The notes beneath the pieces were generated by a model. The model worked only from the letters and a program-made list of their open reading frames with translations. It made no database searches and was not told the origin of the DNA. The position numbers and the translations under genes are program-made. A stretch of DNA of 64,000 nt from Bugula neritina (taxonomy: Eukaryota > Animalia > Bryozoa), in contig OZ037767.1 of NCBI GenBank assembly GCA_964035545.1, forward strand, positions 18,258,259-18,322,258, read 5' to 3'. Shown here one piece after another: positions 15,301 to 63,400 of the stretch; position 1 is the first letter of the stretch, and the number at the start of each line of letters is the position of its first letter.

Positions 15301-15861
15301 AATACACTGCAACACACTACAACATACAGAAATACAGTGTAACATATTGAAATACACTGCAACACAATGATATATACTGCAACATACCGAAATATATGGT
15401 AAACTACTGAAATATACTGTAACACATTGAAAAATACTGCAACATAAAGAAATATACTGTGACACACTGAAATATACTGCAACATACTGAAATACACTGA
15501 AACATACTGAAGTATACTGCAACATACTGAAATAGACTGCTACATACTGAAATATACTTCAAGATACTGCAACAAACTGAAATACATTGTAACATACTGA
15601 AATACACTGCAACATACTGCATTATACTGACATCTACTGGGACATATGGAATTACACTGCAACAAATTGAAGTACACTGCGACGCACTGAAACATACGTC
15701 AACATACCAAAATGTACTGCAACATACTGAGATACACTGTAATATACTGAAATATACTGCAACCTACTGCAACATACTGACATACGCTGTAACATATTGA
15801 AATACAGTGCAACACATTGAAATATACTCTAACTAACTGAAATATAGTGTAATATACGGAA

Positions 15862-17265
15862 ATGTACTGTGACATTATAAACACAATTATCAATGATGGC
15901 GCTTTTCCAAATGAACTAAAAAAAGCTAAAGTTGTTCCTCTACACAAAAAAGGCATAGCTACTGATGTAAGTAATTACCGCCCAATTTCTATACTACCTG
16001 TTTTCAGTAAGATAGCTGAAAAGATTTTAAATAAGCAAATAGTAGATTTTCTAGAAAGCAAAAATTATTTAACTGATAAGCAGTACGGCTTTAGACGAAA
16101 TAGAAACACAAATAATGCCTTAATTAATCTAACAAATAAGGTTTTAAATGCCATGAACAATGGTAATTCTGTAGCTGGAATTTTCCTCGATTTTAGTAAG
16201 GCCTTTGACACAATAAATCATGAAATCTTATTAGCTAAATTAAAAATGCTCCACTTTTCAAGTCACAGTGTGAAGCTAATTAAAAATTATCTGTCCAATC
16301 GTCAACAGTCTACTATTATTAACAACACATATTCTGACTTTATTCATATCACATGTGGAGTACCACAAGGATCCATACTTGGTCCCACACTATTCCTAAT
16401 TTATATAAATGATCTTCCAGATGTAACTATGCATTTAGACCCTATATTATTTGCCGATGATACGAACCTCTTCTTTGAATCAAAAAATCTATTAAACAAT
16501 ATGGACGTCATAAACTGTGAATTAAAGAAAATTGAAAATTGGTGCAATAAAAATAAATTAACTGTAAATATGAGTAAAACAAACTATATGATAATCAAAA
16601 CAGCGCAAAATAAACAAGATTTAAATGGCTTTGCCTTAGAAATGTTTAACAAAAAATTAGTGGAAGTAAAATCAACTACCTTCTTAGGTATTATAATAGA
16701 TTCACATCTTTCTTGGCAACAACATTGCAGCAAACTTTGTCAAAACCTAAGGCCCTTAGTAGGCTTGATAAGTAAATGTTCCAATCACCTACCTAGAAAA
16801 ATTCTAATACAAATATATAACTCTTTTGTAAATTCTAAATTAACATATTGCCTAGAATCGTGGGGTAATGCAGCAAACATTTATCTTGAACCACTACATT
16901 TACTGCAAAAGAAAATACTGAGAATTATATATAAAAAGCATCACCTTTCCCCATCTAAACCACTGTTTCTTAGTTCTTCAATCATGCCTATTCACACTCT
17001 ACACAAATTCAAATTAATACTGCTCTCACATAAACTTTACTATTCTCAACTAACACATCTCACACATAACTATCCCACAAGATTTTCAGAGTTCAGCCTA
17101 CAAACTCCTCCATCATCAACTGCTGCAGGTCAACGAAGAGTGGAATTCCAATGTTCGTCGCTATGGAATAAATTGCCTAGTTCTATTCGTGCTGTGGAGA
17201 GGGAGGCTGGTTTCAAACTTGCCCTGAGAGACCATCTAATGGCAAATTTCCAGATAAAAAAATAA
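15862..17265 (+). CDS. LINE ORF2 fragment: reverse transcriptase plus C-terminal region, endonuclease missing; frame open, ATG lies in the satellite flank
   Basis: Motifs AKVVPLHKKG, NYRPISILPVFSKIAEK, QYGFR, FLDFSKAFDTINH, GVPQGSILGP, LFADDT, FLGIIID and LWNKLP; 467 codons without a stop. Confidence 0.9.
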   Translation: MYCDIINTIINDGAFPNELKKAKVVPLHKKGIATDVSNYRPISILPVFSKIAEKILNKQIVDFLESKNYLTDKQYGFRRNRNTNNALINLTNKVLNAMNNGNSVAGIFLDFSKAFDTINHEILLAKLKMLHFSSHSVKLIKNYLSNRQQSTIINNTYSDFIHITCGVPQGSILGPTLFLIYINDLPDVTMHLDPILFADDTNLFFESKNLLNNMDVINCELKKIENWCNKNKLTVNMSKTNYMIIKTAQNKQDLNGFALEMFNKKLVEVKSTTFLGIIIDSHLSWQQHCSKLCQNLRPLVGLISKCSNHLPRKILIQIYNSFVNSKLTYCLESWGNAANIYLEPLHLLQKKILRIIYKKHHLSPSKPLFLSSSIMPIHTLHKFKLILLSHKLYYSQLTHLTHNYPTRFSEFSLQTPPSSTAAGQRRVEFQCSSLWNKLPSSIRAVEREAGFKLALRDHLMANFQIKK

Positions 17266-17333
17266 TACTTTTTTAAGTTGCTAAAACTTCCAAAAACCTA
17301 AACAAAAATCTTATATAACTGTCAACCATTCAT

Positions 17334-17378
17334 GGCTCGGTGCCCCGACTAGCTACAGTGCTATTGCGCCATAGGCCC
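17334..17378 (+). promoter_or_regulatory. LINE 3'-UTR stem-loop (putative RT recognition element), element 1
   Basis: GC-rich island in an AT-rich UTR. Inner stem TAGC(17350)/GCTA(17360); outer stems GGTGC/GCGCC and GGCT/GGCC with G-U pairs. Homologous to 60249-60292. Confidence 0.6.
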
Positions 17379-17434
17379 TGTCATTTTGTTTATTTTTTTC
17401 TCAATTAATTTTTTCCCGACTATGACAAAATAAA

Positions 17435-17470
17435 AAACAAACAAACAAACAAACAAACAAACAAACAAAC
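17435..17470 (+). repeat. (AAAC)9 LINE 3' tail
   Basis: Nine perfect AAAC units immediately after AATAAA. Confidence 0.95.
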
Positions 17471-20252
17471 ATACTGGAATATACTGTAACACAATGAAAT
17501 ATACTTCAACATACTGAAATACGCTGTAACATACTGAAATATACTGCAACCTACTGCAACATACTAAAATACACTGTAACATACTGAAATACACTGCAAC
17601 ATACTACAACATACTGAAATACACTGTAACATATTGAAATACACTGCAACACACTGAAATATACTGCAACATACCGAAATATATGGTAAACTACTGAAAA
17701 ATACTGTAACACATTGAAAAATACTGCAACATACCGAAATATACTGTAACACACTGAAATATACTGCAACATACTGAATTACACTGTAACATACTGAAAT
17801 ATACTGCAACATACTGAAATACGCTGCTACATACTGAAATATACTGCAAAATACTGCAACATACTGAAATACACTGTAACATACTGAAATAAACTGCAAC
17901 ACACTGAAATATACTGCAACATACCGAAATATATGGTAGACTACTGAAAAATACTGTAACACATTGAAAAATACTGCAACATACTGAAATATACTGTAAC
18001 ACACTGAAATATACTGCAACATACTGAAGTACACTGTAATATACTGAAATACACTGTAACATACTGAAATACACTGCGACATACTACAACATACTGAAAT
18101 ACACTGTAACATATTGAAATACACTGCAATACACTGAAACATATTGAAATACACTGCAACACACTGAAATATACTGCAACATCCCGAAATAAATGGTAAA
18201 CTACTGAAATATACTGTAACACATTGAAAAATACTGCATCATATTGAAATATAGTGTAACACACTGAAATATACTGCAACATACTGAAATACACTGTAAC
18301 ATACTAAAAGATACTGCAACATAGTGAAATACACTGCTACATACTGAAATATACTGCAACATACTGCAACATACTGAAATACATTGTAACACACTGAAAT
18401 ACGCTGAAACATACTGCAACATATTGAAATACACTGCAACACATCGAATTATACTGCAACATACCTAAATATACAGTAATATACTGAAATATACTGTAAC
18501 ACATTGAAAAGTACTGAAACATACTGAAATATACTGAAAGACACTGCTACATACTGAAATATACTGCAAGATACTGCAACATACTGAAATACACTATAAC
18601 ATACTGAAATATACTGCAACATACTGAAATACACTGCTACATACTGAAATATACTGCAACATACCTAAATATACGGTCATATACTACAATATACTGTAAC
18701 ACATTGAAAAACACTGCAACATACTGAACTATACTGCAAGATACTGAAATGCACTGTAACATACTGAAACACACTGCAACATACTGCATTATACTGACAT
18801 ACGCTGTAACATATTGAAATACACTGCAACACATTGAAATATACTCTAACTCACTGAAATATAGTGTAATATACGGAAATGTACTGTGACATACTGGAAT
18901 ATACTGTAACACAATGAAATATACTTCAACATACTGAAATACGCTGTAACATACTGAAATATACTGCAACCTACTGCAACATACTGAAATACACTGTAAC
19001 ATACTGAAATACACTGCAACATACTACAACATACTGAAATACACCGTAACATATTGAAATACACTGCAACACACTGAAATATACTGCTACATACCGAAAT
19101 ATATGGTAAACTACTGAAAAATACTGTAACACATTGAAAAATACTGCAACATACTGAAATATACTGTAACACACTGAAATATACTGCAACATACTGAATT
19201 ACACTGCTACATACTGAAATATACTGCAAAATACTGCAACTTACTGAAATACACTGTAACATACTGAAATACACTGCAACATACTGCATTATACTGACAT
19301 CTACTGGGACATATGGAATTACACTGCAACAAATTGAAGTACACTGCGACGCACTGAAACATACGGCAATATACTGAAATGTACTGCGACACATTGATAT
19401 ATACTGCAACATACTGAAATATGCTGTAGCGTACTGAAATTCACTGCAACACACTGAAGTATACTGTAATATACAGAAATGTAATGTAACAAACTGAAAC
19501 ATACGTCAACATACTGCAACATACTGCAACATACTGAAATACGCTGTAAAATACTGAAATACACTGCAACATACTGAATTATACTGACATACACTGGAAC
19601 ATATTGAAATATACTGCAACAAATTGAAGTATACTGCAACACACTGAAACATACGGCAACATACTGAAATATACTGCGACACATTGAAATATACTGCAAC
19701 ATACTGAAATACACTGTATCATACTGAAATAAACTGCAACACACTGAAGTGTACTGTAATATACAGACATGTACTGTAACAAACTGAAACATACGTCAAC
19801 ATACTAAAATGTACTGCAACAGACTGAGATACACTGTAATATACTGAAATATACTGCAACATACTGCATTATACTGACATACGCTGTAACATATTGAAAT
19901 ACACTGCAACGCTTTGAAATATACTGTAACTCACTGAAATATACTGCAACATACTGAAATACACTGCAACATACTACAACATACTGAAATACACTGTAAC
20001 AGATCGAATTACACTGCAACAAATTGAAATATACGGCAACATACCAAAATATACGATAAACTACTGAAATATCCTGTAACACATTGAAATACACTTTAAC
20101 ATACTGAAATATACTGCAACCTACTGCAACATACTGACATACGCTGTAACATATTGAAATACACTGCAACACATTGAAATATACTGTAACTCACTGAAAT
20201 ATAGTGTAATATACGGAAATGTACTGTAACATACTGGAATATACTATAACAC

Positions 20253-23200
20253 ACTGAAATACACTGTAACATACTGCAACATTCTAAAATACACTGTAAC
20301 ATATCGAAATACACTGCCACACACTGAAATATACTGCAACATACCGAAATCAATGGTAAACTACTGAAATATACTGTAACACAATGAAAAACACTGCAAC
20401 ATACTGAACTATACTGCAAGATACTGCAACATACTGAAATACACTGTAACATACTGAACCACACTGCAACATACTGCATTATACTGACATACGCTGTAAC
20501 ATATTGAAATACACTGCAACGCTTTGAAATATACTGTAACTCACTGAAATATACTGCAACATACTGAAATACACTGTAACATACTGAAGTATACTGCATC
20601 ATACTGAAATAAACTGCTACATACTGAAATATACTTCAAGATACTGCCACAAACTGAAATACACTGTAACATACTGAAATACACTGCAACATACTGCATT
20701 ATACTGACATACACTGGAACATATTGAAATATACTGCAACAAATTGAAGTATACTGCAACACACTGAAACATACGGCAACATACTGAAATATACTGCGAC
20801 ACATTGAAATATACTGCAACATACTGAAATACACTGTATCATACTGAAATAAACTGCAACACACTGAAGTGTACTGTAATATACAGACATGTACTGTAAC
20901 AAACTGAAACATACGTCAACATACTAAAATGTACTGCAACATACTGAGATACACTGCAATATACTGAAATATACTGCAACCTACTGCAACATACTGACAT
21001 ACGCTGTAACATATTGAAATACACTGCAACACATTGAAATATACTCTAACTCACTGAAATATAGTGTAATATACGGAAATGTACTGTGACATACTGGAAT
21101 ATACTGTAACACAATGAAATATACTTCAACATACTGAAATACGCTGTAACATACTGAAATATACTGCAACCTAGTGCAACATACTGAAATACACTGTAAC
21201 ATACTGAAATACGCTGCAACATACTACAACATACTGAAATACACTGTAACATATTGAAATACACTGCAACACACTGAAATATACTGCAACATACCGAAAT
21301 ATATGGTAGACTACTGAAAAATACTGTAACACATTGAAAAATACTGCAACATACTGAAATATACTGTAACACACTGAAATATACTGCAACATACTGAAAT
21401 ACACTGTAACATACTGAAATACACTGTAACATACTGAAATACACTGCGACATACTACAACATACTGAAATACACTGTAACATATTGAAATACACTGCAAT
21501 ACACTGAAACATATTGAAATACACTGCAACACACTGAAATATACTGCAACATACCGAAATAAATGGTAAACTACTGAAATATACTGTAACACATTGAAAA
21601 ATACTGCAACATATTGAAATATAGTGTAACACACTGAAATATACTGCAACATACTGAAATACACTGTAACATACTAAAATATACTGCAACATACTGAAAT
21701 ACACTGCTACATACTGAAATATACTGCAACATACTGCAACATACTGAAATACACTGTAACATACTGAAATACGCTGAAACATACTGCAACATACTGAAAT
21801 ACACTGCAACACATCGAATTATACTGCAACATACCTAAATATACAGTAATATACTGAAATATACTGTAACACATTGAAAAGCACTGCACCATACTGAAAT
21901 ATACTGAAAGACACTGCTACATACTGAAATATACTGCAACATACCTAAATATACGGTAATATACTAAAATATACTGTAACACATTGAAAAACACTGCAAC
22001 ATACTGAACTATACTGCAAGATACTGAAATACACTGTAACATACCGAAATATACTGCAACATACTGCATTATACTGACATACGCTGTAACATATTGAAAT
22101 ACACTGCAACACATTGAAATATAATCTAACTCACTAAAATATAGTGTAATATACGGAAATGTACTTTGACATACTGGAATATACTGTAACACAATGAAAT
22201 ATACTTCAACATACTGAAATACGCTGGAACATACTGAAATATACTGCAACCTACTGCAACATACTGAAATACACTGTAACATACTGAAATACACTGCAAC
22301 ATACTACAACATGCTGAATTACACTGTAACATATTGAAATACACTGCAACGCACTGAAATATACTGCAACATACCGAAATATATGGTAAACTACTGACAA
22401 ATAATGTAAAACATTGAAAAATACTGCAACATACTGAAATATACTGTAACACACTGAAATATACTGCAACATACTGAAATACACTGTAACATACCGAAAT
22501 ATACTGCAACATACTGAAATACACTGCTACATACTGAAATATACTGCAAAATACTGCAACATACTGAAAAACACTGTAACATACTGAAATACACTGCAAC
22601 ACACTACAACATACAGAAATACAGTGTAACATATTGAAATACACTGCAACACAATGATATATACTGCAACATACCGAAATATATGGTAAACTACTGAAAT
22701 ATACTGTAACACATTGAAAAATACTGCAACATAAAGAAATATACTGTGACACACTGAAATATACTGCAACATACTGAAATACACTGAAACATACTGAAAT
22801 AGACTGCTACATACTGAAATATACTTCAAGATACTGCAACAAACTGAAATACATTGTAACATACTGAAATACACTGCAACATACTGCATTATACTGACAT
22901 CTACTGGGACATATGGAATTACACTGCAACAAATTGAAGTACACTGCGACGCACTGAAACATACGTCAACATACCAAAATGTACTGCAACATACTGAGAT
23001 ACACTGTAATATACTGAAATATACTGCAACCTACTGCAACATACTGACATACGCTGTAACATATTGAAATACAGTGCAACACATTGAAATATACTCTAAC
23101 TAACTGAAATATAGTGTAATATACGGAAATGTACTGTGACATACTGGAATATACTGTAACACAATGAAATATACTTCAACATACTGAAATACGCTGTAAC

Positions 23201-26200: not shown

Positions 26201-28011
26201 ATATTGAAATACACTGCAACGCACTGAAATATACTGCAACATACCGAAATATATGGTAAACTACTGACAAATAATGTAAAACATTGAAAAATACTGCAAC
26301 ATACTGAAATATACTGTAACACACTGAAATATACTGCAACATACTGAAATACACTGTAACATACCGAAATATACTGCAACATACTGAAATACACTGCTAC
26401 ATACTGAAATATACTGCAAAATACTGCAACATACTGAAAAACACTGTAACATACTGAAATACACTGCAACACACTACAACATACAGAAATACAGTGTAAC
26501 ATATTGAAATACACTGCAACACAATGATATATACTGCAACATACCGAAATATATGGTAAACTACTGAAATATACTGTAACACATTGAAAAATACTGCAAC
26601 ATAAAGAAATATACTGTGACACACTGAAATATACTGCAACATACTGAAATACACTGAAACATACTGAAATAGACTGCTACATACTGAAATATACTTCAAG
26701 ATACTGCAACAAACTGAAATACATTGTAACATACTGAAATACACTGCAACATACTGCATTATACTGACATCTACTGGGACATATGGAATTACACTGCAAC
26801 AAATTGAAGTACACTGCGACGCACTGAAACATACGTCAACATACCAAAATGTACTGCAACATACTGAGATACACTGTAATATACTGAAATATACTGCAAC
26901 CTACTGCAACATACTGACATACGCTGTAACATATTGAAATACAGTGCAACACATTGAAATATACTCTAACTAACTGAAATATAGTGTAATATACGGAAAT
27001 GTACTGTGACATACTGGAATATACTGTAACACAATGAAATATACTTCAACATACTGAAATACGCTGTAACATACTGAAATATACTGCAACCTACTGCAAC
27101 ATACTAAAATACACTGTAACATACTGAAATACACTGCAACATACTACAACATACTGAAATACACTGTAACATATTGAAATACACTGCAACACACTGAAAT
27201 ATACTGCAACATACCGAAATATATGGTAAACTACTGAAAAATACTGTAACACATTGAAAAATACTGCAACATACCGAAATATACTGTAACACACTGAAAT
27301 ATACTGCAACATACTGAATTACACTGTAACATACTGAAATATACTGCAACATACTGAAATACGCTGCTACATACTGAAATATACTGCAAAATACTGCAAC
27401 ATACTGAAATACACTGTAACATACTGAAATAAACTGCAACACACTGAAGTGTACTGTAATATACAGACATGTACTGTAACAAACTGAAACATACGTCAAC
27501 ATACTAAAATGTACTGCAACATACTGAGATACACTGTAATATACTGAAATATACTGCAACCTACTGCAACATACTGACATACGCTGTAACATATTGAAAT
27601 ACTTTGCAACACATTGAAATATACTCTAACTCACTGAAATATAGTGTAATATACGGAAATGTACTGTGACATACTGGAATATACTGTAACACAATGAAAT
27701 ATACTTCAACATACTGAAATACGCTGTAACATACTGAAATATACTGCAACCTACTGCAACATACTGAAACACACTGTAACATACTGAAATACACTGCAAC
27801 ATACTGAATTATACTGACATACACTGGGACATATTGAAATACACTGCAACAAATTGAAGTATACTGCAACACACTGAAACATACGCCGACACACTGAAAA
27901 ATACTGCGACACATTGAAATATACTGCAACATACTGCAACATACTGAAATACATTGTAACATACTGAAATACACTGCAACATACTACAACATACTGAAAT
28001 ACACTGTAACA
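20253..28011 (+). repeat. 3870-bp near-perfect tandem duplication
   Basis: ORFs 20541/24411, 21171/25041, 22527/26397, 23234/27104 and 23691/27561 are identical at offset 3870; identity is lost at 28012. Confidence 0.93.
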
Positions 28012-31000
28012 GATCGAATTACACTGCAACAAATTGAAATATACTGCAACATACCAAAATATACGATAAACTACTGAAATATCCTGTAACACATTGAAAT
28101 ACACTTTAACATACTGAAATATACTGCAACCTACTGCAACATACTGACATACGCTGTAACATATTGAAATACACTGCAACACATTGAAATATACTGTAAC
28201 TCACTGAAATATAGTGTAATATACGGAAATGTACTGTAACATACTGGAATATACTATAACACACTGAAATACACTGTAACATACTGCAACATTCTAAAAT
28301 ACACTGTAACATATCGAAATACACTGCCACACACTGAAATATACTGCAACATACCGAAATCAATGGTAAACTACTGAAATATACTGTAACACAATGAAAA
28401 ACACTGCAACATACTGAACTATACTGCAAGATACTGCAACATACTGAAATACACTGTAACATACTGAACCACACTGCAACATACTGCATTATACTGACAT
28501 ACGCTGTAACATATTGAAATACACTGCAACGCTCTGAAATATACTGTAACTCACTGAAATATACTGCAACATACTGAAATACACTGTATCATATTGAAAT
28601 AAACTGCAACACACTGAAGTGTACTGTAATATACAGACATGTACTGTAACAAACTGAAACATACGTCAACATACTAAAATGTACTGCAACATACTGAGAT
28701 ACACTGTAATATACTGAAATATACTGCAACCTACTGCAACATACTGACATACGCTGTAACATATTGAAATACACTGCAACACATTGAAATATACTCTAAC
28801 TCACTGAAATATAGTGTAATATACGGAAATGTACTGTGACATACTGGAATATACTGTAACACAATGAAATATACTTCAACATACTGAAATACGCTGTAAC
28901 ATACTGAAATATACTGCAACCTACTGCAACATACTGAAATACACTGTAACATACTGAAATACACTGCAACATACTACAACATACTGAAATACACTGTAAC
29001 ATATTGAAATACAATGCAACACACTGAAATATACTGCAACATACCGAAATATATGGTAGACTACTGAAAAATACTGTAACACATTGAAAAATACTGCAAC
29101 ATACTGAAATACACTGTAACATACTGAAATACACTGTAACATACTGAAATACACTGCAACATACTGCATTATACTGACATCTACTGGGACATATGGAATT
29201 ACACTGCAACAAATTGAAGTACACTGCGACGCACTGAAACATACGGCAATATACTGAAATGTACTGCGACACATTGATATATACTGCAACATACTGAAAT
29301 ATGCTGTAGCGTACTGAAATTCACTGCAACACACTGAAGTATACTGTAATATACAGAAATGTAATGTAACAAACTGAAACATACGTCAACATACTGCAAC
29401 ATACTGCAACATACTGAAATACGCTGTAAAATACTGAAATACACTGCAACATACTTAATTATACTGACATACACTGGAACATATTGAAATATACTGCAAC
29501 AAATTGAAGTATACTGCAACACACTGAAACATACGGCAACATACTGAAATATACTGCGACACATTGAAATATACTGCAACATACTGAAATACACTGTATC
29601 ATACTGAAATAAACTGCAACACACTGAAGTGTACTGTAATATACAGACATGTACTGTAACAAACTGAAACATACGTCAACATACTAAAATGTACTGCAAC
29701 AGACTGAGATACACTGTAATATACTGAAATATACTGCAACATACTGCATTATACTGACATACGCTGTAACATATTGAAATACACTGCAACGCTTTGAAAT
29801 ATACTGTAACTCACTGAAATATACTGCAACATACTGAAATACACTGCAACATACTACAACATACTGAAATACACTGTAACAGATCGAATTACACTGCAAC
29901 AAATTGAAATATACGGCAACATACCAAAATATACGATAAACTACTGAAATATCCTGTAACACATTGAAATACACTTTAACATACTGAAATATACTGCAAC
30001 CTACTGCAACATACTGACATACGCTGTAACATATTGAAATACACTGCAACACATTGAAATATACTGTAACTCACTGAAATATAGTGTAATATACGGAAAT
30101 GTACTGTAACATACTGGAATATACTATAACACACTGAAATACACTGTAACATACTGCAACATTCTAAAATACACTGTAACATATCGAAATACACTGCCAC
30201 ACACTGAAATATACTGCAACATACCGAAATCAATGGTAAACTACTGAAATATACTGTAACACAATGAAAAACACTGCAACATACTGAACTATACTGCAAG
30301 ATACTGCAACATACTGAAATACACTGTAACATACTGAACCACACTGCAACATACTGCATTATACTGACATACGCTGTAACATATTGAAATACACTGCAAC
30401 GCTTTGAAATATACTGTAACTCACTGAAATATACTGCAACATACTGAAATACACTGTAACATACTGAAGTATACTGCATCATACTGAAATAAACTGCTAC
30501 ATACTGAAATATACTTCAAGATACTGCCACAAACTGAAATACACTGTAAAATACTGAAATACACTGCAACATACTGCATTATACTGACATACACTGGATC
30601 ATAGTGAAATATACTGCAACAAATTGAAGTATACTGCAACACACTGAAACATACGGCAACATACTGAAATATACTGCGACACATTGAAATATACTGCAAC
30701 ATACTGAAATACACTGTATCATACTGAAATGAACTGCAATACACTGAAGTGTACTGTAATATACAGACATGTACTGTAACAAACTGAAAAATACGTCAAC
30801 ATACTAAAATGTACTGCAACATACTGAGATACACTGCAATATACTGAAATATACTGCAACCTACTGCAACATACTGACATACGCTGTAACATATTGAAAT
30901 ACACTGCAACAGATTGAAATATACTCTAACTCACTGAAATATCGTGTAATATACGGAAATGTACTGTGACATACTGGAATATACTGTAACACAATGAAAT

Positions 31001-38700: not shown

Positions 38701-39200
38701 TATACTGCAACACGCTGAAACATCTGACAACATACTGAAATGTACTGCAACACATTGAAATATACTGCAACTCGCTGAAACATCTGACAACATACTGAAA
38801 TATACTGCGAGACATTGAAAAACACTGCAACATAGTGAAATATGCTATAACATACTGGATTAGACTGCAACATACTGCAACATACTGAAATACGCTGTAA
38901 CATATTGAAATACACCGCAACACATTAAAATATACTGCAACAAACTGAAACATACGGCAACATACTGAAAAGTACTGCAACACATTGAAATATACTGCAA
39001 CACACTGAAACATCCGACAACATACTGAAATATACTGCGAGACATTGAAATATACTGCAACATAGTGAAATATGCTGTAACATACTGAAATATACTGCAA
39101 CATGTCAAAGTATATCGAAATTTATGGACATGTACTGTAACATGCTGAAACATACTGCAACATACTAAAGTATACTGTAACAAATTTGCTGTAACATATT
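32790..39200 (+). repeat. Older ~3.6-kb HOR duplication in subfamily II (offset 3583-3603)
   Basis: ORF pairs 32933/36536 (3603) and 34174/37757, 34695/38278, 35084/38667 (3583), with scattered substitutions between copies. Confidence 0.85.
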
Positions 39201-48200: not shown

Positions 48201-49107
48201 CGTACTGTAACATACTGAAACATACGTCAACATACTGAAATGTACTGCAATACATTGAAATATACTGCAACACGCTGAAACATCTGGCAACATACTGAAA
48301 TGTACTGCAACACATTGAAATATACTGCAACACGCTGAAACATTTGACAACATACTGAAATATACTGCGAGACATTGAAAATTACTGCAACATAGTGAAA
48401 TATGCTGTAACATACTGGATTAGACTGCAACATACTGCAACATACTGAAATACGCTGTAACATATTGAAATACACCGCAACACATTAAAATATACTGCAA
48501 CAAACTGAAACATACGGCAACATACTGAAAAGTACTGCAACACATTGAAATATACTGCAACACACTGAAACATCTGACAACATACTGAAATATACTGCGA
48601 GACATTGAAATATACTGCAACATAGTGAAATATGCTGTAACATACTGAAATATACTGCAACATGTCAAAGTATATCGAAATATATGGACATGTACTGTAA
48701 CATACTGACACATACTGCAACATACTAAACTATACTGTAACAAATTTGCTGTAACATATTGAAATGCACTGCAACATACTGAAATACACTGCAACATACC
48801 TAAATATCTGGTAACATGTTCAAACATACTGCAACACATTGAAATATACTGCAACATACTGATATACGCTGTAGCACACTGAAAAACAGTGCAACAAACT
48901 GAAATATAGTGTAATATACGGCAATGTACTGTAACATACTGAAATACACTGTAACACATTGAAATATACTGCAACATACTGAAACATATGGCAACATACT
49001 GAAAAGTACTGCAACACATTGAAATATACTGCAACATACTGAAACATATGGCAACATACTGAAAAGTACTGCAACACTTTGAAATATACTGCAACATACT
49101 GAAATAT

Positions 49108-49863
49108 CACAGGATAGTTAAGGGCAACCTTTTAGCTGCAACTGCCTTGCTGAGGTTTGCATTGTAATCATATAAGAATTCAGTACCAGTAAAATAAAAT
49201 CTCACCTAATTGTGCTAGAGTCAAAATTTAAAAACTATGTTGTAGATCTTTTTTTTCTCCAGTGTAAGATTTTTGGAACTTTCAATTTTCCTTTTTTTCG
49301 CAAAGTTATAGACAAAAAACTGCCGAATTTTGGCCAATTTTGCCTGAAAAGCTGACTTTTCAGTACCAGTAAAATATCTCAGCAGCAAAGCATGATATCT
49401 GAATAAAAATTGCACTGCTGGAATCCTGAGATATTTTTCCAGTGTAAGTTTTTTTCTTTTTTCAATAACTCTGCTAGATTTCTCAGAAATTGGTGATTTA
49501 TAAACTGAAAATGCCATATTTTCTCATAAGAAACTAGCAGCGCACAGCACTTCACGCTTCACTGAGCACGTAGGGATGAGAAGATATTGGCGCCTACATA
49601 ATAATTACAGGCTAGCTAGCTGGCAGGCTATAATGAATAGCTCGCTTTGTACTTTGTTTATGTAGCACCCATAATGGAATGTTGATAGATAATGCAGCCC
49701 TAACGAAGGTTGTTGCTTATTGGTTGTAGTTTAATCTTAGGCTAAACAATTACAAGTAGGCAACACGAATGCCACCCGCAGAGCAATATTATCCAAGAAC
49801 CTGAACTACATTTTGAGAGAAATTTATGACATTCTTAGTGAGGATGCCCTTAACTATCCTGTG
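49108..49863. mobile_element. 756-bp non-autonomous DNA transposon, probably CMC (EnSpm/CACTA-like) superfamily
   Basis: TIRs CACAGGATAGTTAAGGGCA(A/T)CCT at 49108-49130 and 49841-49863 (19 bp perfect, 22/23 overall). 2-bp TSD AT at 49106-49107 and 49864-49865; removing the element restores satellite gaaatatgctgtagcattcc. No transposase ORF. Superfamily inferred from CAC termini plus the 2-bp TSD. Confidence 0.9.
49179..49520 (+). repeat. Diverged ~180-bp tandem duplication inside the TIR element
   Basis: ttcagtaccagtaaaata at 49179 and 49359; tccagtgtaag at 49258 and 49438 (both offset 180). Confidence 0.75.
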
Positions 49864-52800
49864 ATGCTGTAGCATTCCAAAATACATTCTAACACACTGA
49901 AGTATACTGTAATATACAAAAACGTACTGTAACATACTGAAACATACGTCAACATACTGAAATGTACTGCACCATAGTGAAATTTACTGCAACATACTGA
50001 AATATATCGCAACAAACTGAAATTTATGGTAACATACTGAAATATGTTGCAAACTACGAAAATAAACTGCAACATACCGAAAAATACTGCAACTGTGCAA
50101 CATAATGAGATATACTGCAGAAATACTGAAATATCCTGCAACAACTTAAAGGTTACTGTATGATACTGAAATATACTCAAACACACTGAAATAAACTGCA
50201 AAATACTGAAATATACTGTAACATACTGAAACATACTGCAACATACAGCAACATACTGAAATATACTGTAACACATTGAAATACACTGCAACACATTGAA
50301 ATAGACTGCAACATACCAGAATATATGGTAAACTACTGAAATATACTGTAACACCTTGAAGAACACTGCAACATACTGAAATATACTGCAAGATACTGCA
50401 ACATACTGAATTACAGTGTAACATACTGAAATACACTGCAACATACTTCAACATACTGCAACATACTGAAATACACTGTAACATATTGAAATACACTGCA
50501 ACACATTGAAATACACTGCAACAGACTGAAACATCTGACAACATACTGAAATATACTGCGAGACATTTAAATGTACAGCAACATAGTGAAATATGCTGTA
50601 ACATACTGAAATAAACTGTAACATACGGAAATATATTGTGACATACTGAAATACATGGAAACATTCTGAAATATACTGCAACATACTGATTTATATTGCA
50701 ATATACTGAGATACACTGTAATATACTGAGTTACATTGCAACATACTGCAACATACTGAAATACGCTGTAACATATTGAAATACACTGCAACACATTGAA
50801 ATATACTGCAACAAACTGAAACATACGGCAACATGATGAAATATACTGCAGAAATACTGAAATATACTGCAACAACTTAAAAGTTACTGTATGATACTGA
50901 AATATACTCAAACACACTGAAATAAACTGCAAAATACTGAAATATACTGTAAAATACTGAAACATACTGCAACATACAGCAACATACTGAAATATACTGT
51001 AACATATTGAAATACACTGCAACACATTGAAATAAACTGCAACATACCAGAATATATGGTAAACTACTGAAATATACTGTAACACCTTGAAAAACACTGC
51101 AACATACTGAAATATACTGCAAGATACTGCAACATACTGAAATATACTGTAACATACTGAAATATACTGCGAGACATTTAAATATACAGCAACATAGTGA
51201 AATATGCTGTAACATACTGAAATATACTGCAACATATCAAAGTATATCGCAATATATGGACATGTACTGTAACATACTGAAACATATTGCAACATACTGA
51301 AATATACCGTAACACATTGAAAAACACTGCAACATACTGAAATATACTGCAAGATGCTGAAATATACTGCAACATACTGCAACACACAGAAATTTGCTGT
51401 AACATATTGAAATGCACTGCAACATACTGAAACATACTGGAACATACTAAATTATACTGGAACATACCGAAACATACTGCAACACAATGAAATACACTGT
51501 AACACACTGAAATACACTGCAACATACTACAACATATTGAAATACACTGCAACACATCAAAATATACTGCAGCATACCTAAATATACGGTAATAAACTGA
51601 AATATACTGTAACACCTTGAAAAATACTGCAACATACTGAAATATAATGCAAGATACTGCAACATACTGAAATACACTGTAACATACTGAAATACACCGC
51701 TACATACTGCATTATACTGACATACACTGGAACATATTGAAATACACTGCAACAAATTGAAGTATACTGCAACACACTGAAACATACGGAAACATACTGA
51801 AATATACTGCGACACATTGAAATGTACTGCAACATACTGAGATACACTGTAATATACTGAATCACACTGCAACATACTGCAACATACTGAAATACGCTGT
51901 AACATATTGAAATACACCGCAACACATTGAAATATACTGCAACAAACTGAAACATACGGCAAGATACTGAAAAGTACTGCAACACATTGAAATGTACTGC
52001 AACATACTGAAATATGCTGTAGCAATCGGAAATACATTCCAACACACTGAAGTATACTGTAATATACAGAAACGTACTGTAACATATTGAAACATACGTC
52101 AACATACTGAAATGTACTGCAACATACTGAAATATACCGCAACAAACTGAAATTCATGGTAGCATACTGATATATGTTGCAAACTACTAAAATAAACTGC
52201 AACATACCGAAAAATACTGCAATTGTGCAACATAATGAAATATACGGCAAAAACACTGAAATATACTGCAACAACTTGAAAGTTACTGTATGATGCTGAA
52301 ATATACTCAAACACACTGAAATAAACTGCAAAATACTGAAAGATACTGTAACATACTGAAACATACTGCAACACACTGAAGTATACTGCAACATACCTAA
52401 ATATACTGCAAGATACTGCAACATACTGAAATATACTGTAACATACTGAAATACACTGCAACATACCTAAATATACGGTAACATATTGAAATATACTGCA
52501 ACATACTGATATACGCTGTAGCACACTGAAAAACAGTGCAACACACTGAAATATAGTGTAATATACGGCAATGTAATGTAACATACTGAAATATACTGTA
52601 ACACATTGAAATATACTGCAACACATTGAAATAAACCGCAACATTCCGAAAAATACTGCCACTGTCCAACATAATGAAATATACTGCAGAAATACTGAAA
52701 TATACTACAACAACTTAAAAGTTACTGTATGATACTGAAATATACTCAAACACACTGAAATATACTGCAAAATACGGAAATATACTGTAACATACTGAAA

Positions 52801-55800
52801 CATACTGCAACATAAAGCATTATACTGAAATATACTGTAACATATTTAAATACACTGCAACACATTGAAATAAACCGTAACATACAGAAATATATGGTAA
52901 ACTACTGAAATATACTGTAACACATTGAAAAACACTGCAACATACTGAAATATACTGCAAGATACGGCAACATACTGAAATACACTGTAACATACTGAAA
53001 TACACTGCTACATACTGCATTATACTGCAACATACTGCAACATACTGAAATACACTGTTCCATATTGAAATACACTGCAACACATTGAAATATACTGCAA
53101 CACAATGAAACGTCTGACAACATACTGAAATATACTGCGAGACATTGAAATATACTGCAACATAGTGAAATATGCTGTAAAATACTGAAATATACTGCAA
53201 CATATCAAAGTATATCGAAATATACGGACATGTACTGTAACATACTGAAACATACTGCAACATACTAAAATATACTGGAACATACCGAAACATACTGCAA
53301 CATAAGGAAATATACTGTAACACACTGAAATATACGGCAAACTACTGAATTATGTTGTAACATACTGAAACATACCTCAACATACTGAAATATACTGTAA
53401 CACATTAAAAAACACTGCAACATACTGAAATATACTGCAAGATACTGCAACATACTGAAAAATACTGTAACATACTGAAATATACTGCGAGACATTTAAA
53501 TATACAGCAACATAGTGAAATATGCTGTAACATACTGAAATATACTGCAACATATCAAAGTATATCGCAATATATGGACATGTATTGTAACATACTGAAA
53601 CATATTGCAACATACTGAAAAGTACTGCAACACATTGAAATATACTGCGACATACTGAAATATACTGTAACATACTGAAATACACTGCAACATACTGCAA
53701 CATACTGCAATATACTGAATTACACTGTGACATACTGGAATACACTGCAACACATTGAAACATACTGCAACTCACTGAAACATTTTTCAACATACTGAAA
53801 TATACTGCAAGATATCGAAGTATATCGTAATATACGGACATGTACTGTAACATACTGAAACATACTGAAACATACTGAAACATACTAAAATATACTGGAA
53901 CATACCGAAACATACTGCAGCATAATGAAATATACTGTAACACTTCGAGTTATATGGCAAAATACTGAATTAAGTTGTAACATACTGAAACACACTGCAA
54001 CACACCTAAATATACGGTAACATATTGAAGCATACTGCAACACATTGAAATATACTGAAACATACTGATATACGCTGTAGCACACTGAAAAACAGTGCAA
54101 CACACTGAAATATAGTGTAATATACGGCAATGTACTGTAACATACTGAAATATACTGTAACACATTGAAATATACTGCAACACATTGAAATAAACTGCAA
54201 CATACCGAAAAATACTGCCACTGTCCAACATAATGAAATATACTGCAGAAATACTGAAATATACTGCAACAACTTAAAAGTTATTGTATGATGCTGAAAT
54301 ATACTCAAACACACTGATATATACTGCAAAATACTGAAACATACTGCAACACACTGAAGTATACTGCAACATACCTAAATATACTGCAAGATACTGCAAC
54401 ATACTGAAATATACTGTAACATACTAAAATACACTGCAACAGACTGCAACATACTGCAACATACTGCAACATACTGCAACATACTGAAACATACTTCAAC
54501 ATACTGAAAGATACTGCAAGATAATGAAGTATATCGTAATATACGGACATGTACTGTAACATACTAAAATATACTGGAACATACCGAAACATACATCAAC
54601 ATAATGAAATATACTGTAACACACTGAAATATACGGCAAACTACTGAATTATGTTGTAACATACTGAAACAAACCACAACATACTGAAATATACTGTAAC
54701 ACATTGAAAAACACTGCAACATACTGAAACATACTGCAAGATGCTGCAACATACAGAAATACACTGTAACACACTAAAATACACTGCAACATACTATAAC
54801 ATATTGAAATACACTGCAACGCATCAAAATATACTGCAGCATACCTAAATATACGGTAATAAACTGAAATATACTGTAACACATTGGAAAATACTGCAAC
54901 ATACTGAAATATAATGCAAGATACTGCAACATACTGAATTATACTGCTACATACGTAATACACGGTAACACACCAACATATTATACCGTAACCTGTAGAA
55001 ACATGTTGTGACATATTGAAATACACTGAAATATACTGAAATATACTGCAACATACTGATATATACAGCAACATACTGATATGCACTGCAACATACTGAA
55101 ATATACTGTAACATACTGAAATACACTGCAACATACTACAACATACTGAAATACACTGTAACATATTGAAATACACTGCAACACTTTGAAATATACTGCA
55201 ACATACCGAAATACATGGCAAACTACTGAAACATACTGTAACACAATGAAAAATACTGCAACATACCGAAATAGACTGTGACACACAAAAATATACTGCA
55301 ACATACTGAAATAAACTTTAACATGCTGAAATAGACTGCAACATACTGAAATACACTGTTACATACTGTAATATACTGCAACATACTGCAAATTACTGAA
55401 ATACACGGTAACATACTGAAATACACTGCAACATACTGCAAATTACTGAAATACACGGTAACATACTGAAATACACTGCAACATACTGAAATACACTGTT
55501 ACATACAGAAATATACTACAACACACTGCAACATACTGAAATACACTGTAACACACTGAAATACACTGCAACCTACTACAACATATTGAATTACACTGCA
55601 ACACATCAAAATATACTGCAACATACCTAAATATACGGTAATAAACTGAAATATACTGTAACACATTGAAAAAAAACTGCAACATACTGAAATGTAATGC
55701 AAGATACTGCAACATACTGAAATACACTGGAACATACTGATATACACTGCAACAAATTGAAGTATACTGCAACACACTGAAACATACGGAAACATATTGA

Positions 55801-58800
55801 AATACACCGCAACACATTGAAATATACTGCAACATACTGAAATATACGGCAACATACTGAATTATACTGCTACATACGTAATATACGGTAACACACCAAC
55901 ATATTATACCGTAACCTGTAGAAACATGTTGTGACATATTGAAATACACTGAAACATACTGAAATATACTGCAACATACTGATATATACAGCAACATACT
56001 GATATGCACTGCAACATACTGAAATATACTGTAACATACTGAGATACACTGCAACATACTACAACATACTGAAATACACTGTAACATATTGAAATACACT
56101 GCAACACTTTGAAATATACTGCAACATACCGAAATATATGGCAAACTACTGAAACATACTGTAACACAATGAAAAATACTGCAACATACCGAAATAGACT
56201 GTAACACACTTAAATATACTGCAACATACTGAAATACACTGTTACATACTGTAATATACTGCAACATACTGCAAATTACTGAAATACACGGTAACATACT
56301 GAAATACACTGCAACATACTGCAAATTACTGAAATACACGGTAACATACTGAAATACACTGCAACATACTGAAATACACTGCAACATACTACAACATATT
56401 GAATTACACTGCAACACATCAAAATATACTGCAACATACCTAAATATACGGTAATAAACTGAAATATACTGTAACACATTGAAAAAAATACTGCAACATA
56501 CTGAAATGTAATGCAAGATACTGCAACATACTGAAATACACTGTAACATACTGAAATACACTGCAACATACTGCATTATACTGACATACACTGGAACATA
56601 TTGATATACACTGCAACAAATTGAAGTATACTGCAACACACTGAAACATATGGAAACATATTGAAACACACCGCAACACATTGAAATATACTGCAACATA
56701 CTGAAACATACGGCAACATACTGAAAAGTACTGCAACACATTGAAATTTACTGCAACATACTGAAATATGCTGTAGCATTCTGAAATACATTCCAACACA
56801 CTGAAGTATACTGTAATATACAGAAACGTACTGTAACATCCTGAAACATACGTCAACATACTGAAAACCACTGCAACATACTGAAATAGATTGTAACACA
56901 CTGAAAGATACTGCAACATACTGAAATAAACTGTAACATACTGAAACAGACTGCAACATACTGAAAAACACTGTTACATACTGAATTATACTGCAACAAA
57001 CTGCAACATACTGAAATACACTGTAACATACTGAAATACACTGCAACATACTACAACATACTGAAATACACTGTAACATAGTGAAATACACTGCAACACA
57101 TTGAAATATACTGCAACATAGTGAAATATGCTGTAACATACTGAAATATACCGCAACAGATCGAAGTATATCGTAATATACGGACATGTACTGTAACATA
57201 CTGAAACATACTGAAACATACTGAAACATACTAAGATATACTGGAACATATCGAAACATACTGCAACATACTGCAACATACTGAAATACACTGTAACATA
57301 CTGAAATAGGATGCAATTGACTGTTATATACTGCAACATACTTAAATGTTTTGCAATATACTGAAAGATACTGGAACATACTGAATTTTACTGCAACATA
57401 CTGAACTATACTGTAACATACGTAATCTACTGTAACATACTGAAATATAATGTACCAGGCTGAAATATATTGTAACATACTGAAATACACTGTAATACTG
57501 AAATATACTGCAATATACTGATATATACTGCAACACACTGATACATACTGCAACACAGTGAAATAAACTGTAAAAAAATTGAATTAAACTGTAACATACT
57601 GAAATATACTGTAACAAACTGAAATGTACTGCAACATTCTGTAATAATTTGCTGCATACTGATATATACTGCAACATACTGAATTATACTGCTACATACG
57701 TAATATACGGTAACACACCAACATATTATACCGTGTGTTGTGACATATTGAAATACACTGAAACAAACTGAAATATACTGCAACATACTGATATATACAG
57801 CAACATACTGATATGCACTGCAACATACTGAAATATACTGTATCGTACTGAAATACACTGTAACATACTGAATCGTACTGTAACACATTATATATAATAT
57901 TCTAACACAATGAAATATACTGTAATATACTAAAATATACTATAACATACTGAAATATACAGCTGCATACTGATATATACTGCAACATACTGCAACATAC
58001 TGCAACGCACTGGAATATACTGTCACACACGTAATATACAGTAACACATCGAAATATACCGTAACATGTTGAAATATATTCTAACATATTGAAATACACT
58101 GAAACATACTGAAATATACCCCCAACATACTGATATATACCGCAACATACTGATATATACTGCAGCAAACTGAAATATATTGTAACAAACTGAAATATAC
58201 TGTGACATACCGAAATAGGCTGCAACAGACTGTTATACACTGTAACATACTGAAAGATACTGCAACATGCTGAATTTTACTGCAACATACTGAAATATAC
58301 TGCAACATACGTAGTCTACCGTAACATACTAAAATATAATGTAACAGGCTGAAATATATTCTATCATACTGAAATACACTGCAATACTGAAATATACTGC
58401 CACACACTGATATATACTGCAACACATTGAAATATACTGTAAAATACTGAAATAAACTGTAACATACGGAAATATATTGTGACATACTGAAATACATTGA
58501 AACATTCTGAAATATACTGCAACATACTGATATATATTGCAACACACTGATATATACTGCAATACACTGAAATATACTGTGAAATACTAAAATAGACTCT
58601 AACATACTGAAGTACACTGTAACATACTGAAATATACTGTAACCTACTGAATTAAACTGCAAGATACTGAAATATACTACAACATGCTGATATATGAATA
58701 CTAAAACATACTGAATCTTACTGTAACACATTAAATATATTCTAACATAATGAAATATACTGTAATATACTAAAATATACTGCAACAAACTGAAATATGC

Positions 58801-58968
58801 TGCAACAGACTGACATATACTGCAGCACACTGAAATTTCTTGCAACATACTGAAAGATACTGCAACATACTGATATATACTGTAACACATTGAAAAACAC
58901 TGCAACATACTGAAATATACTGCAAGATGCTGCAACATACTGAAATACACTGTAACACACTGAAATAC
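49864..58968 (+). repeat. 10-bp/20-bp satellite array, segment 3 (diverged subfamily II)
   Basis: Same monomers with more substitutions and indels; lies between the TIR element and the second LINE. Confidence 0.98.
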
Positions 58969-60208
58969 TTGAAAAAATAATCTGCAGGCAATTAAATGAA
59001 CATTTAAACCTACACAAAATTTTGTCGGTTTCTCAATTTGGCTTCCAACAGAAGAAGGGTGCACAAGACGCACTGTTTAAGTTTTCAGACCAATCCTTCA
59101 AAGCACTTAATGACTCATCAGTAATATTGGGTATTTTCATTGATTTCTCAAAAGCATTCGATACAATCAACCACAATATTTTGCTACAGAAACTACGAGA
59201 TTACAATTTTGATTCTCACTCCATAAGTTTAATCCAAAACTACTTGACCAATCGAACTCAGCATGTTATAATAGAGAACAGTATATCCAATTCCTTGCAT
59301 ATCACCTGTGGAGTTTCCCAGGGCTCTATCTTGGGCCCTGTGCTCTTTCTGCTGTACATAAATGATTTAGCTACCCATTGTCCTCTTTTTGACACTGTTC
59401 TGTTTGCCGACGACACAAATCTTTTTTGGAAGAGCAAAGATTTAAATGCTGATATTGGAAATATAAACTCCTCACTAAATAAAGTTAACAACTGGTGCAT
59501 TGCAAACAAACTAACTCTAAACTTAACGAAAACAAACTATATCATTGTTAAAAACTACCAAAAGAATTTTGTACTTAACAGTACCATCCATATTGACAAT
59601 ATACCTCTCTCACCTAGCTCAGAAATAAAATTTTCAGGTCTAGTCATTAACATTAACTTAAACTGGTGTGCTCATATAAATTTTTCAAGGACTCAGCTCA
59701 ACAAAGTAACTGGTATGATATACTTAGCTTCAAAGTTTTTACCATACAAAGCTTTGATTTTATTATATAACAGTCTGATAAACAGCAAACTTACATTTTG
59801 CTTAGAAGCCTGGGGAAATGCCCCTAAAACCCATCTGAACAAGTTGCTTTTAATTCAAAAGCGCATTATTCGCATTATTTTCCACAAATCACCTACTGAA
59901 CACACGTCACCTCTATTTATCAAAGCAGAAATTCTTCCTATTGATCTCTTGTATATCTACAGCCTATGTCTTCTTGGTCATTCAGCTTATTATACTCCAT
60001 CTCACACCAAACAACCACCAACTTACCTCACCAGACATTCTGAACTTTCCCTACCCTTACCTCTCTCTACCTCCGCAGCAGGTCATCGTCAAACGTCCTA
60101 CCAGATGTCTAGCAATTGGAAGAAACTGCCTCTCACTTTAAAACATCATCAAAGCTTTGCCACATTTAAATATTGTTGAAAAAGCACCTACTAAAATCTT
60201 TAACTTAA
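58965..60208 (+). pseudogene. Degenerate LINE ORF2 reverse transcriptase fragment
   Basis: Reads ILEKII...QFGFQ...FIDFSKAFDTINH...GVSQGSILGP...LFADDT...KFSGLVI. Conserved positions are altered (GVPQG to GVSQG, FLG to FSG). An apparent 1-bp frameshift at ~60171 stops the frame at 60179, while the shifted frame gives LLKKHLLKSLT* (stop 60206-60208), aligning to ALRDHLM of element 1. Confidence 0.88.
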
Positions 60209-60248
60209 TCTAAATAAATAGTTCCCACTATTTTTTCAACTGCCACTT

Positions 60249-60292
60249 GGGCCCCGCTCCTTGAATAGCTATGCTACTGAGCACATGGGCCC
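60249..60292 (+). promoter_or_regulatory. LINE 3'-UTR stem-loop (putative RT recognition element), element 2
   Basis: Nested stems GGGCCC/GGGCCC, GCTC/GAGC and TAGC(60266)/GCTA(60273); shares primary motifs with 17334-17378. Confidence 0.65.
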
Positions 60293-60402
60293 CCATCTTG
60301 ACTTTGATTGATATTATATATAAATTGAATTTAGCTCTTTTTGTGTTACTGTTGTATATTTGTATTTTTTTTGTCCTTTTGTTTTTTTGATGGAAATAAA
60401 GA

Positions 60403-60422
60403 AAACAAACAAACAAACAAAC
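60403..60422 (+). repeat. (AAAC)5 LINE 3' tail
   Basis: Five AAAC units after AATAAAGA. Confidence 0.93.
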
Positions 60423-63400
60423 ATGCTACAACATATTGAAATACACTGCAACACATCAAAATATACTGCAACATACCGAAATATACGGTAATAAACTGAA
60501 ATATACTGTAACACATTGAAAAAAACTGCAACATAATGAAATATAATGCAAGATACTGCAACATACTGAAAAACACTGTAACATACTGAAATACACTGTA
60601 ACATACTGAAATACACTGCAACATACTGCATTATACTGACATACACTGGAACATACTGAAATACACTGCAAGAAATTGAAGTATACTGCAACACACTGAA
60701 ACATACGGCAACATACTGAAAAGTACTGCAACAGATTGAAATATACTGCAACATACTGAAATATGCTGTAGCATTCTGAAATACATTCCAATACACTGAA
60801 GTATACTGTAGTATACAGAAACGTACTGTAACATACTGAAACATACGTCAACATACTGAAATGTACTGCAACATACTGAAATATACCGCAGCAAACTGAA
60901 ATTCATGGTAACAAACTGAAATATGTTGCAAACTACTACAATAAGCGGCAACATACCGAAAAACACTGCAACTGTGCAACATAATGAAATATACTGCAAA
61001 AAATACTGAAATGTACTGCAACAACTTAAAAGTTACTGGATGATGCTGAAACATACTCAAACACACTGAAATAAACTGCAAATTACTGAAAGATACTGTA
61101 ACATACTGAAACATACTGCAACACACTGAAGTATTCTGCAACATACCTAAATATACTGCAACATACTGCAACATACTGAAATATACTGTAACATACTGAA
61201 AAACACTGCAACATACTGCAACATACTGCAACATACTGAATTACACTGTGACATACTGGAATACACTGCAACACATTGAAACATACTGCAACACACTGAA
61301 ACATACTTCAACATACTGAAATATACTGCCAGATAACGAAGTATATCGTAATATACGGACATGTACTGTAACATACTGAAACATATTGAAACATACTGAA
61401 ACATACTAAAATATACTGAAACACACCAAAACATACTGCAACATAATGAAATATACTGTAACACACTGAAATAAATGGCAAACTACTGAATTATGTTGTA
61501 ACATACTGAAAAATACTGCAACCTACTGAAATTTACTGTAACACATTGAAAAACACTGCAACATACTAAAATATACTGCAAGATGCTGCAACATACTGAA
61601 ATACACTGTAACATACTGAAATACACTGCAACATACTACAACATATTGAAATACACTGTAACATATTGAAATAAACTGCAACATTTCGAAATATATGGTA
61701 ACTACTGAAATATACTGCAACATACTGCAACATACTGCAACATACTGAAATACACTGTAGCATATTGAAATACACTGCAACACAGTGAAATATACTGCAA
61801 CACACTTAAACATCTGACAACATACTGAAATATTATGCGAGACATTGAAATATACTGCAACATAGTGAAATATGCTGTAACATACTGAAATATACCGCAA
61901 TAGATCGAAGTATATCGTAATATACGGACATGTACTGTAACATACTGCAACATACTGAAATATGCTGTAGCATTCTGAAATACATTCCAACACACTGAAG
62001 TATACTGTAATATACAGAAACGTACTGTAACATACTGAAACATACTGCAACATACTGAAATGTACTGCAACATACTACAACATACTGAAACATACTGAAA
62101 CATACCGAAATATACTGCAACATACTGAAATATACTTCAACATACTGATATATACTGCAGCATACTGCAACACACGGAAACTTGCTGTAACATATTGAAA
62201 TGCACTGCAACATACTGAAATACACTGCAATATACCTAAATATATGGTAATATACTGAAATATACCGTAACTTATTGAAAAACAATGCAACATACAGAAA
62301 TATACTGTAACACATTGAAATATACTGCAACATACTGAAATATACTGTAACATACTGAAACATACTGCAACACACTGAAGTATACTGCAACATACCTAAA
62401 TAAACTGCAAGATACTGCAACATACTGAAATATACTGTAACATATTGAAATACACTGCAACATACTGCAACATACTGCAACATTTTGAATTACATTGTGA
62501 CATACTGAAATACACTGCAACACATTGAAACATACTGCAACACACTGAAACATACTTCAACATACTGAAATATACTGCAAGATATCGAAGTATATCGTAA
62601 TATACGGACATGTACTGTAACATACTAAAACATACTGAAACATACTGAAACATACTGAAACATACTGAAACATACTAAAACATACTGGAACATACCGAAA
62701 CATACTGCAACATAATGAAATATACTGTAACACACTGAATTATATGGCAAAATACTGAATTATGTTGTAGCATACTGAAACACATTGCAACATACTGAAA
62801 TATACTTCAACATACTGAAATGTACTGCAACATACTGCAACAGGCGGAAATTTGCTGTAACATATTGAAATGCACTGCAACATACTGAAATACACTGCAA
62901 CATACCTAAATATACGGTATCATATTGAAATATACTGCAACACATTGAAATATACTGCAACATACTGATATACGCTGTAGGACACTGAAAAACAGTGCAA
63001 CTCATTGAAATATAGTGTAATATACGGAAATGTACTGTAACATACTGAAATATACCGCAACATACTGAAATACACGGTAACATACTGAAATATACTGCAA
63101 CATACTGAAATACACTGTTACATACTGAAATATACTGCAACATACTGCAACATACTGAAATACACTGTAACACACTGAAATACACTGCAACATACTACAA
63201 CATATTGAAATACACTGCAACACATCAAAATATACTGCAACATACTGCAACATACTGAATTACACTGTGACATACTGAAATACACTGCAACACATTGAAA
63301 TATACTGCAACAGACTGAAACATACTTCAACATACTGAAATATACTGCAAGATATCGAAATATATTGTAATATACGGACATGTACTGTAACATACTGAAA

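Follow-up and report, generated by a model that had tools for sequence, protein, structure and literature searches.

Co-oriented insertions of dispersed, (AAAC)n-tailed LINE families in a strand-asymmetric satellite of Bugula neritina

In Cuscuta europaea, a short endonuclease motif that is conserved in the monomer of the satellite CUS-TR24 leads to insertion of the long interspersed nuclear element (LINE) L1-CS at two monomer positions and in a preferred orientation (PMC8091179). Strictly target-specific LINEs, including microsatellite-specific families, have essentially all of their copies in the target (PMC4640811). In RTE-related retroposons, the first duplicated base correlates with the microsatellite-like 3′ tail (PMC6007223), while CR1-type “stringent” LINEs carry a hairpin in the 3′ untranslated region (UTR) followed by a short tandem-repeat tail, which is thought to be the recognition site of the reverse transcriptase (RT), according to the summary of Suh 2015 given in PMC8665684. 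The stretch studied here, 64 kb of the bryozoan Bugula neritina (positions 18,258,259 to 18,322,258 of contig OZ037767.1; hereafter, the window), is one tandem satellite array that contains two LINE copies, element 1 and element 2. An earlier interpretation, made from the letters of the window alone (the sequence-only reading), had proposed that these LINEs belong to a lineage specialized for the satellite. We find that they are most probably 5′-truncated copies of two young, dispersed sister families, for which the satellite is a permissive and motif-dense but not a dedicated target.

Both LINEs lie on the plus strand, and in both an AATAAA signal and an (AAAC)n tail are joined directly to an AT of the satellite, as the sequence-only reading had described; the first LINE begins at 15872, however, and not at 15868, where that reading had placed it (Table 1). 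Element 1, the family 1 copy, comprises the C-terminal part of open reading frame 2 (ORF2), with its stop codon at 17263 to 17265, followed by the 3′ UTR and the tail, and is 99.9 to 100% identical to at least six other copies on five contigs (C1, C2, C3, C5, and C7). Element 2, the family 2 copy, shares about 97% identity with the copies nearest to it. Its 5′ boundary is ambiguous within 58966 to 58972, since the letters AAATACT are common to satellite and LINE and form a 6- to 7-nucleotide (nt) microhomology at the 5′ join. The ORFs of the two LINEs are the C-terminal halves of reverse transcriptases (Pfam RVT_1, E values of 1e-37 for element 1 and 4e-26 for element 2; a further RVT_1 match in ORF2 had an E value of 7e-37). 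They share 45% identity over 399 amino acids (aa), and the C-terminal motifs that had been quoted as common to them are present in each, so the two LINEs represent distinct families of one lineage, as had been supposed.

The assembly that we searched comprises 216 Mb in 321 contigs. Family-specific anchors of 17 to 19 nt, with at most one mismatch, were combined with BLAST-type searches to locate LINE 3′ ends; the DNA following every anchor was read, and anchor matches without a tail were dropped as chance occurrences. The satellite itself makes up an estimated 4.2 to 4.8% of the genome, as extrapolated from two satellite 16-mers: the first occurs 309 times in the 60.1 kb of satellite in the window and 53,102 times in the genome, implying 10.3 Mb (4.8%), and the second occurs 277 and 41,445 times, respectively, implying 9.0 Mb (4.2%). 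Two of the 70 family 1 copies read are in satellite (2.9%), namely, the window copy and a copy 0.36 Mb away in a satellite patch of about 250 bp (L010), and the window copy is the only one among 67 family 2 copies (1.5%). With 3 of 137 copies in satellite (2.2%), the two families combined show 0.5-fold the satellite share (0.3- to 0.7-fold for each family) and thus no satellite enrichment. Elsewhere, the two families occupy unrelated DNA, with copies on each of the nine large contigs. The proposed specialization was therefore not borne out for the families in the window, whose dispersal follows the available sequence space, an outcome that the sequence-only reading had itself named as refuting it. 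Two pairs of family 2 copies have identical flanks (L040/L051 on C5, at 8.20 and 8.30 Mb, and L188/L208 on C3, at 15.24 and 15.84 Mb) and reflect segmental duplications in which a LINE was included.

A third sister family, family 3, has no copy in the window and surfaced through nine satellite junctions that belonged to neither family 1 nor family 2. It has a different 3′ end but shares the hairpin and tail of its sisters, and all 61 of its anchors were exact. Ten of the 61 copies read lie in satellite (16%), and one more occupies a degenerate variant of the satellite. This corresponds to a 3.4- to 3.9-fold enrichment (P = 2e-4 to 2e-3), in a test that was post hoc because the family had been found through its satellite junctions. 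Near-total confinement to one target, the hallmark of the R1/R2/Tx1/Togen type, was found in none of the three families (2/70, 1/67, and 10/61 copies in satellite). Togen in (TG)n, some HERO families, and the R1/Tx1 group resemble our LINEs in that their insertions into tandem repeats have a constant position and orientation; unlike the copies tested here, theirs are essentially all in the target, as far as PMC4640811 and its reference 12 (Kojima & Fujiwara 2004) describe them.

The satellite has a strong strand asymmetry. In the 60.1 kb of satellite in the window, AAC occurs 2908 times on the plus strand and 59 times on the minus strand, in agreement with the dense and one-sided distribution that had been noted earlier. 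AACAT is present at 29.9 sites per kb on the plus strand and at 0.4 per kb on the other, compared with 4.2 per kb in ordinary flanks for both strands combined. Most satellite arrays have the same strand orientation in the assembly. Because the site occurs on only one satellite strand and at a fixed position of the repeat, any LINE inserted in the satellite is expected to be co-oriented and in phase. A genome-wide scan covered stretches of (AAAC)3 or longer that run into satellite, in any phase and in either orientation. A strict junction pattern had a sensitivity of only 26% on this satellite and was replaced by a looser pattern together with direct reading of flanks. The scan matches included only plus-oriented AAAC/AT junctions (the slash marks the junction) and none in the minus orientation, and the flanks of the 70, 67, and 61 copies of families 1, 2, and 3 revealed no satellite copy in the opposite orientation.

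All 13 satellite-embedded copies of families 1 to 3 are co-oriented with the satellite (P = 2e-4). Twelve of them read AAAC/AT and continue with the four final bases of the 10-mer, and the exception is shifted by 2 nt; counting independent copies, 11 of 12 are in the same 10-mer phase (P of about 1e-10 against uniform phase). The view of the satellite as a polarized landing pad for (AAAC)n-tailed LINEs thus held, and the checks on orientation bias and junction phase that the sequence-only reading had suggested showed neither random orientation nor random phase. The closest arrangement described is that of L1-CS in Cuscuta, where a general target motif also lies within a satellite monomer and insertions map to one or two monomer positions; in our families, AAAC/AT is used by the 12 satellite copies and also by 38 to 46% of the nonsatellite copies of families 1 and 3. 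The two systems differ in extent, since up to 50% of L1-CS neighborhoods are satellite, compared with 2 to 16% of copies here, and in the elements involved, which are poly(A) L1s with a TTTT/AA-like site in Cuscuta and carry microsatellite tails here (PMC8091179). We also observed a 556-bp family 3 remnant exactly at a switch of satellite strand near a contig end (L067, C106:380-1100). The satellite on its 5′ side is inverted (0.82 of k-mers on the minus strand) and that on its 3′ side is direct; the switch could be a real inversion at the LINE or an assembly join.

Outside the satellite, too, this junction is preferred. Among nonsatellite copies, AT comes directly after the tail in 23 of 50 from family 3 (46%; P of about 6e-10) and in 26 of 68 from family 1 (38%; P of about 6e-9), against the 11% expected from base composition. 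Of all AAAC/AT-type insertions, 13 of 68 (19%) are located in satellite; by family, the figures are 30% for family 3 (10/33), 7% for family 1 (2/28), and 14% for family 2. The satellite holds about 26% of the AACAT sites of the genome and about 14% of its ACAT sites. Motif availability accounts for the overall number, orientation, and phase of the satellite insertions, with a fit that is unequal between families, and the excess of family 3 is about what the AACAT density of the satellite predicts (30% versus 26%).

Individual target sites provided further detail. Both uninterrupted sister sites of the element 1 target, whose flanks share 99.5% identity with those of element 1, read GTGACATACTGG, and the filled site reads GTG-ACAT-[LINE...(AAAC)9]-ATACTGG. 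Comparison of the empty and filled sites indicates an exact insertion with a 0- to 4-bp duplication at the target GAC/AT, and the empty sites confirm that this target offers the tail a match of just 2 nt (AC), as had been pointed out. Family 1 is young, as judged from the 99.9 to 100% identity of many of its copies and from the uninterrupted sister sites within the same higher-order repeat. In the satellite, the first nick lies directly 5′ of AT after CAAC, after CAAT (L061, which has the 6-bp duplication ATACTG), after GAA (L065), and after GAC (element 1). Copies with both ends readable have duplications of 0 to 11 bp and frequent 5′ microhomology. One family 1 copy (L009, C3:31609769-31613406) seems to have an exceptionally long target-site duplication: about 28 nt of its 5′ flank recurs about 40 nt past the tail, from which a duplication of about 65 bp would follow.

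Integration most probably proceeds by target-primed reverse transcription, with a short and degenerate sequence as its site. The initial nick would fall just 5′ of AT or, less often, 5′ of T, often after A or C bases with which the tail can pair, and the reaction would leave target-site duplications of 0 to 11 bp and 5′ ends joined via microhomology. The satellite, the commonest of the host, carries such a site, CAAC/ATACTG, every 10 to 20 bp on one strand, and the other strand has almost none. The sequence-only reading had pointed to microhomology between tail and target. Pairable A or C bases do often precede the nick; however, nicks also occur 5′ of AT after AAT, GAA, or GAC, and so an endonuclease nick preference is needed in addition to tail pairing, which spans at most 3 nt. 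We infer that the AAAC/AT preference arises from nick choice by the endonuclease together with pairing of the tail. RTE-related retroposons are comparable in that the tail repeat correlates with the first target bases, which suggests that the RNA tail helps to choose or stabilize the priming site; they belong to another LINE clade, however, and their upstream signature is a T-stretch one helical turn away (PMC6007223).

Longer copies show the architecture from which the window elements were truncated. A full-length family 1 copy, stitched from two copies (L213 and L001), has a 186-aa ORF1 followed by an ORF2 frame of 981 codons. ORF1 (L213:2013-2570) matches Pfam PF25298 (Baculovirus FP protein domain 2) with an E value of 1e-11. 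Public relatives retrieved by a word-based protein search are proteins of about 960 aa with 41 to 50% identity, most of them with PF03372/PF14529 plus PF00078. Families 1, 2, and 3 share the (AAAC)n tail and have equivalent 3′-UTR hairpins (−16 to −17.5 kcal/mol), each with a GGCC/GGCC outer stem, a GCGC-type inner stem, and an AGCUA apex, about 50 to 110 nt upstream of the tail; the hairpins were compared through separate folds, as the MAFFT alignment of the family 2 3′ UTR was poor. By analogy, the three families appear to have the CR1-like “stringent” architecture, with an ORF2 of about 970 aa for endonuclease and RT, a short ORF1, a 3′-UTR hairpin, and an (AAAC)n tail. CR1-likeness was judged from this architecture, and the sole pointer to a clade is an automatic “jockey-like” cluster name (Atlas). 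As far as PMC8665684 describes them, the stringent LINEs share with ours a single ORF2 with RT and with an endonuclease that is putative in our families, the hairpin and repeat tail, frequent 5′ truncation, and short or no target-site duplications. They differ in that their tail unit is an amniote 8-mer, as opposed to AAAC in an invertebrate host, and the likeness is one of architecture.

Several points weigh against our interpretation. The anchors miss old, diverged copies, so the census covers those copies that are within anchor reach, and the satellite share of 4.2 to 4.8% (about 9 to 10 Mb) with which it is compared depends on 16-mer densities in a single window. At the N terminus of family 1 ORF2, where an apurinic-type endonuclease would be expected, the matches to the endonuclease domains PF14529 (E = 1e-3) and PF03372 (E = 4e-3) are below threshold. 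Family 2 shows no excess of AT after the tail outside the satellite (6/63, or 10%, against the same expectation of 11%). Family 1 falls below the prediction from AACAT availability (2/28 versus 26%; P = 0.02), family 3 exceeds that from the ACAT model (10/33 versus 14%; P = 0.02), and no single motif model fits all three families. Finally, the tail hides the target bases upstream of the nick in most copies.

The excess of family 3 could also reflect true satellite targeting, in which the lineage, or at least this family, would recognize the satellite beyond the 4- to 5-nt motif, or would recognize its chromatin (e.g., centromeric), and would be becoming site specific. The enrichment of its 10 satellite copies over the satellite share, its surplus over ACAT availability, and the eight or nine independent events among them, with distinct truncation points and flanks, all speak for such targeting. 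However, 84% of family 3, 97% of family 1, and 98.5% of family 2 copies lie elsewhere, the AAAC/AT junction is also used in unrelated DNA, the excess matches the expectation from AACAT density, and the enrichment test was made after the fact. We consider true satellite targeting unlikely. It is likewise doubtful that family 3, potentially with its sisters, represents early satellite targeting, with an (AAAC)n tail and a nick preference tuned to the CAAC/AT step.

An apparent association might instead result from retention bias, that is, random insertion followed by survival in inert satellite and purging from euchromatin. Such a bias is a general expectation for heterochromatin, and family 3 is enriched; families 1 and 2 are not, however, and the older family 2 (95 to 97% identity) has the lowest satellite share. 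Differential survival cannot yield 13 of 13 copies in one orientation or 12 of 13 in one phase. We rejected it as the main cause on account of this orientation and phase lock, and regard it as improbable. Chance, or the amplification of one insertion along with a satellite higher-order repeat, is effectively refuted and hardly credible, for although family 3 includes one pair of duplicates with 100% identity (L068/L069 on contig C135), the other 12 copies, located on 8 contigs, differ in flanks, tails, and 5′ truncation point (64 bp to about 2 kb), and binomial tests gave P = 5e-4 for orientation and P = 1e-10 for phase.

The remaining features of the window are listed with the LINEs in Table 1. 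K-mer mapping of the window detected three nonsatellite stretches only, and the rest, about 60 kb, is the 10-plus-10-bp satellite, with a 10-bp subperiod and a 20-bp unit (3203 copies with 70% matches in Tandem Repeats Finder [TRF]). The third insertion is a terminal inverted repeat (TIR) element and not a LINE; it sits in satellite, apparently with a 2-bp AT duplication, and lies outside the LINE system. Between positions 15832 and 27050 of the window, the satellite is organized into a higher-order repeat about 3.87 kb long, whose copies at 23099 and 26969 share 99.5% identity, and the element 1 insertion is younger than the last homogenization of this repeat. Outside the window, a 4.28-kb repeat (C3:18207022 and C3:18211302) is 99% identical to window positions 30001 to 30600.

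Table 1. Features of the 64-kb window (MFE, minimum free energy; MITE, miniature inverted-repeat transposable element)
Feature	Position	Strand	Basis or remark
LINE family 1 copy (element 1), 5′-truncated, 1.6 kb	15872-17470	+	RVT_1 match; BLAST to longer copies begins at 15872
Element 1 3′-UTR hairpin	17331-17380	+	MFE −16.4 kcal/mol
Element 1 3′ end	AATAAA 17429-17434; (AAAC)9 17435-17470; junction 17470/17471; satellite AT 17471-2	+	Direct read
LINE family 2 copy (element 2), 5′-truncated, about 1.45 kb	58966-60422	+	RVT_1 match; 5′ boundary by comparison with longer copies
Element 2 ORF2 remnant	58977-60179	+	
Element 2 3′-UTR hairpin	60249-60292	+	MFE −17.5 kcal/mol
Element 2 3′ end	AATAAA 60395-60400, then G; A-rich (AAAC)n tail 60402-60422; junction 60422/60423; AT 60423-4	+	Direct read
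Uninterrupted sister sites of element 1 target	23099-23180 and 26969-27050	+	Flanks 99.5% identical to element 1 flanks
Satellite array, period 10/20	1-15871, 17471-49107, 49864-58965, 60423-64000	+	TRF, k-mer map, genome-wide 16-mer counts
TIR element, 756 bp, noncoding, 19-bp perfect TIRs, starts CACAGGATAG	49108-49863	.	MITE-like DNA transposon

Our results add a new instance of known behaviors in CR1-like elements of an invertebrate and do not point to a new kind of mobile element. They illustrate how an integration preference of 2 to 5 nt, acting on a strand-asymmetric tandem repeat, yields perfectly oriented, phase-locked LINE insertions. Seen through a single window, such insertions mimic site specificity, which calls for caution in inferring targeting from a few co-oriented copies. 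If family 3 were tuned to the CAAC/AT step, the satellite would give it a safe haven, one that already receives a sixth of its insertions, and tail and satellite may then be coevolving. Three young sister families with a graded AAAC/AT preference (46%, 38%, and 10%) could make it possible to separate endonuclease choice from tail pairing.

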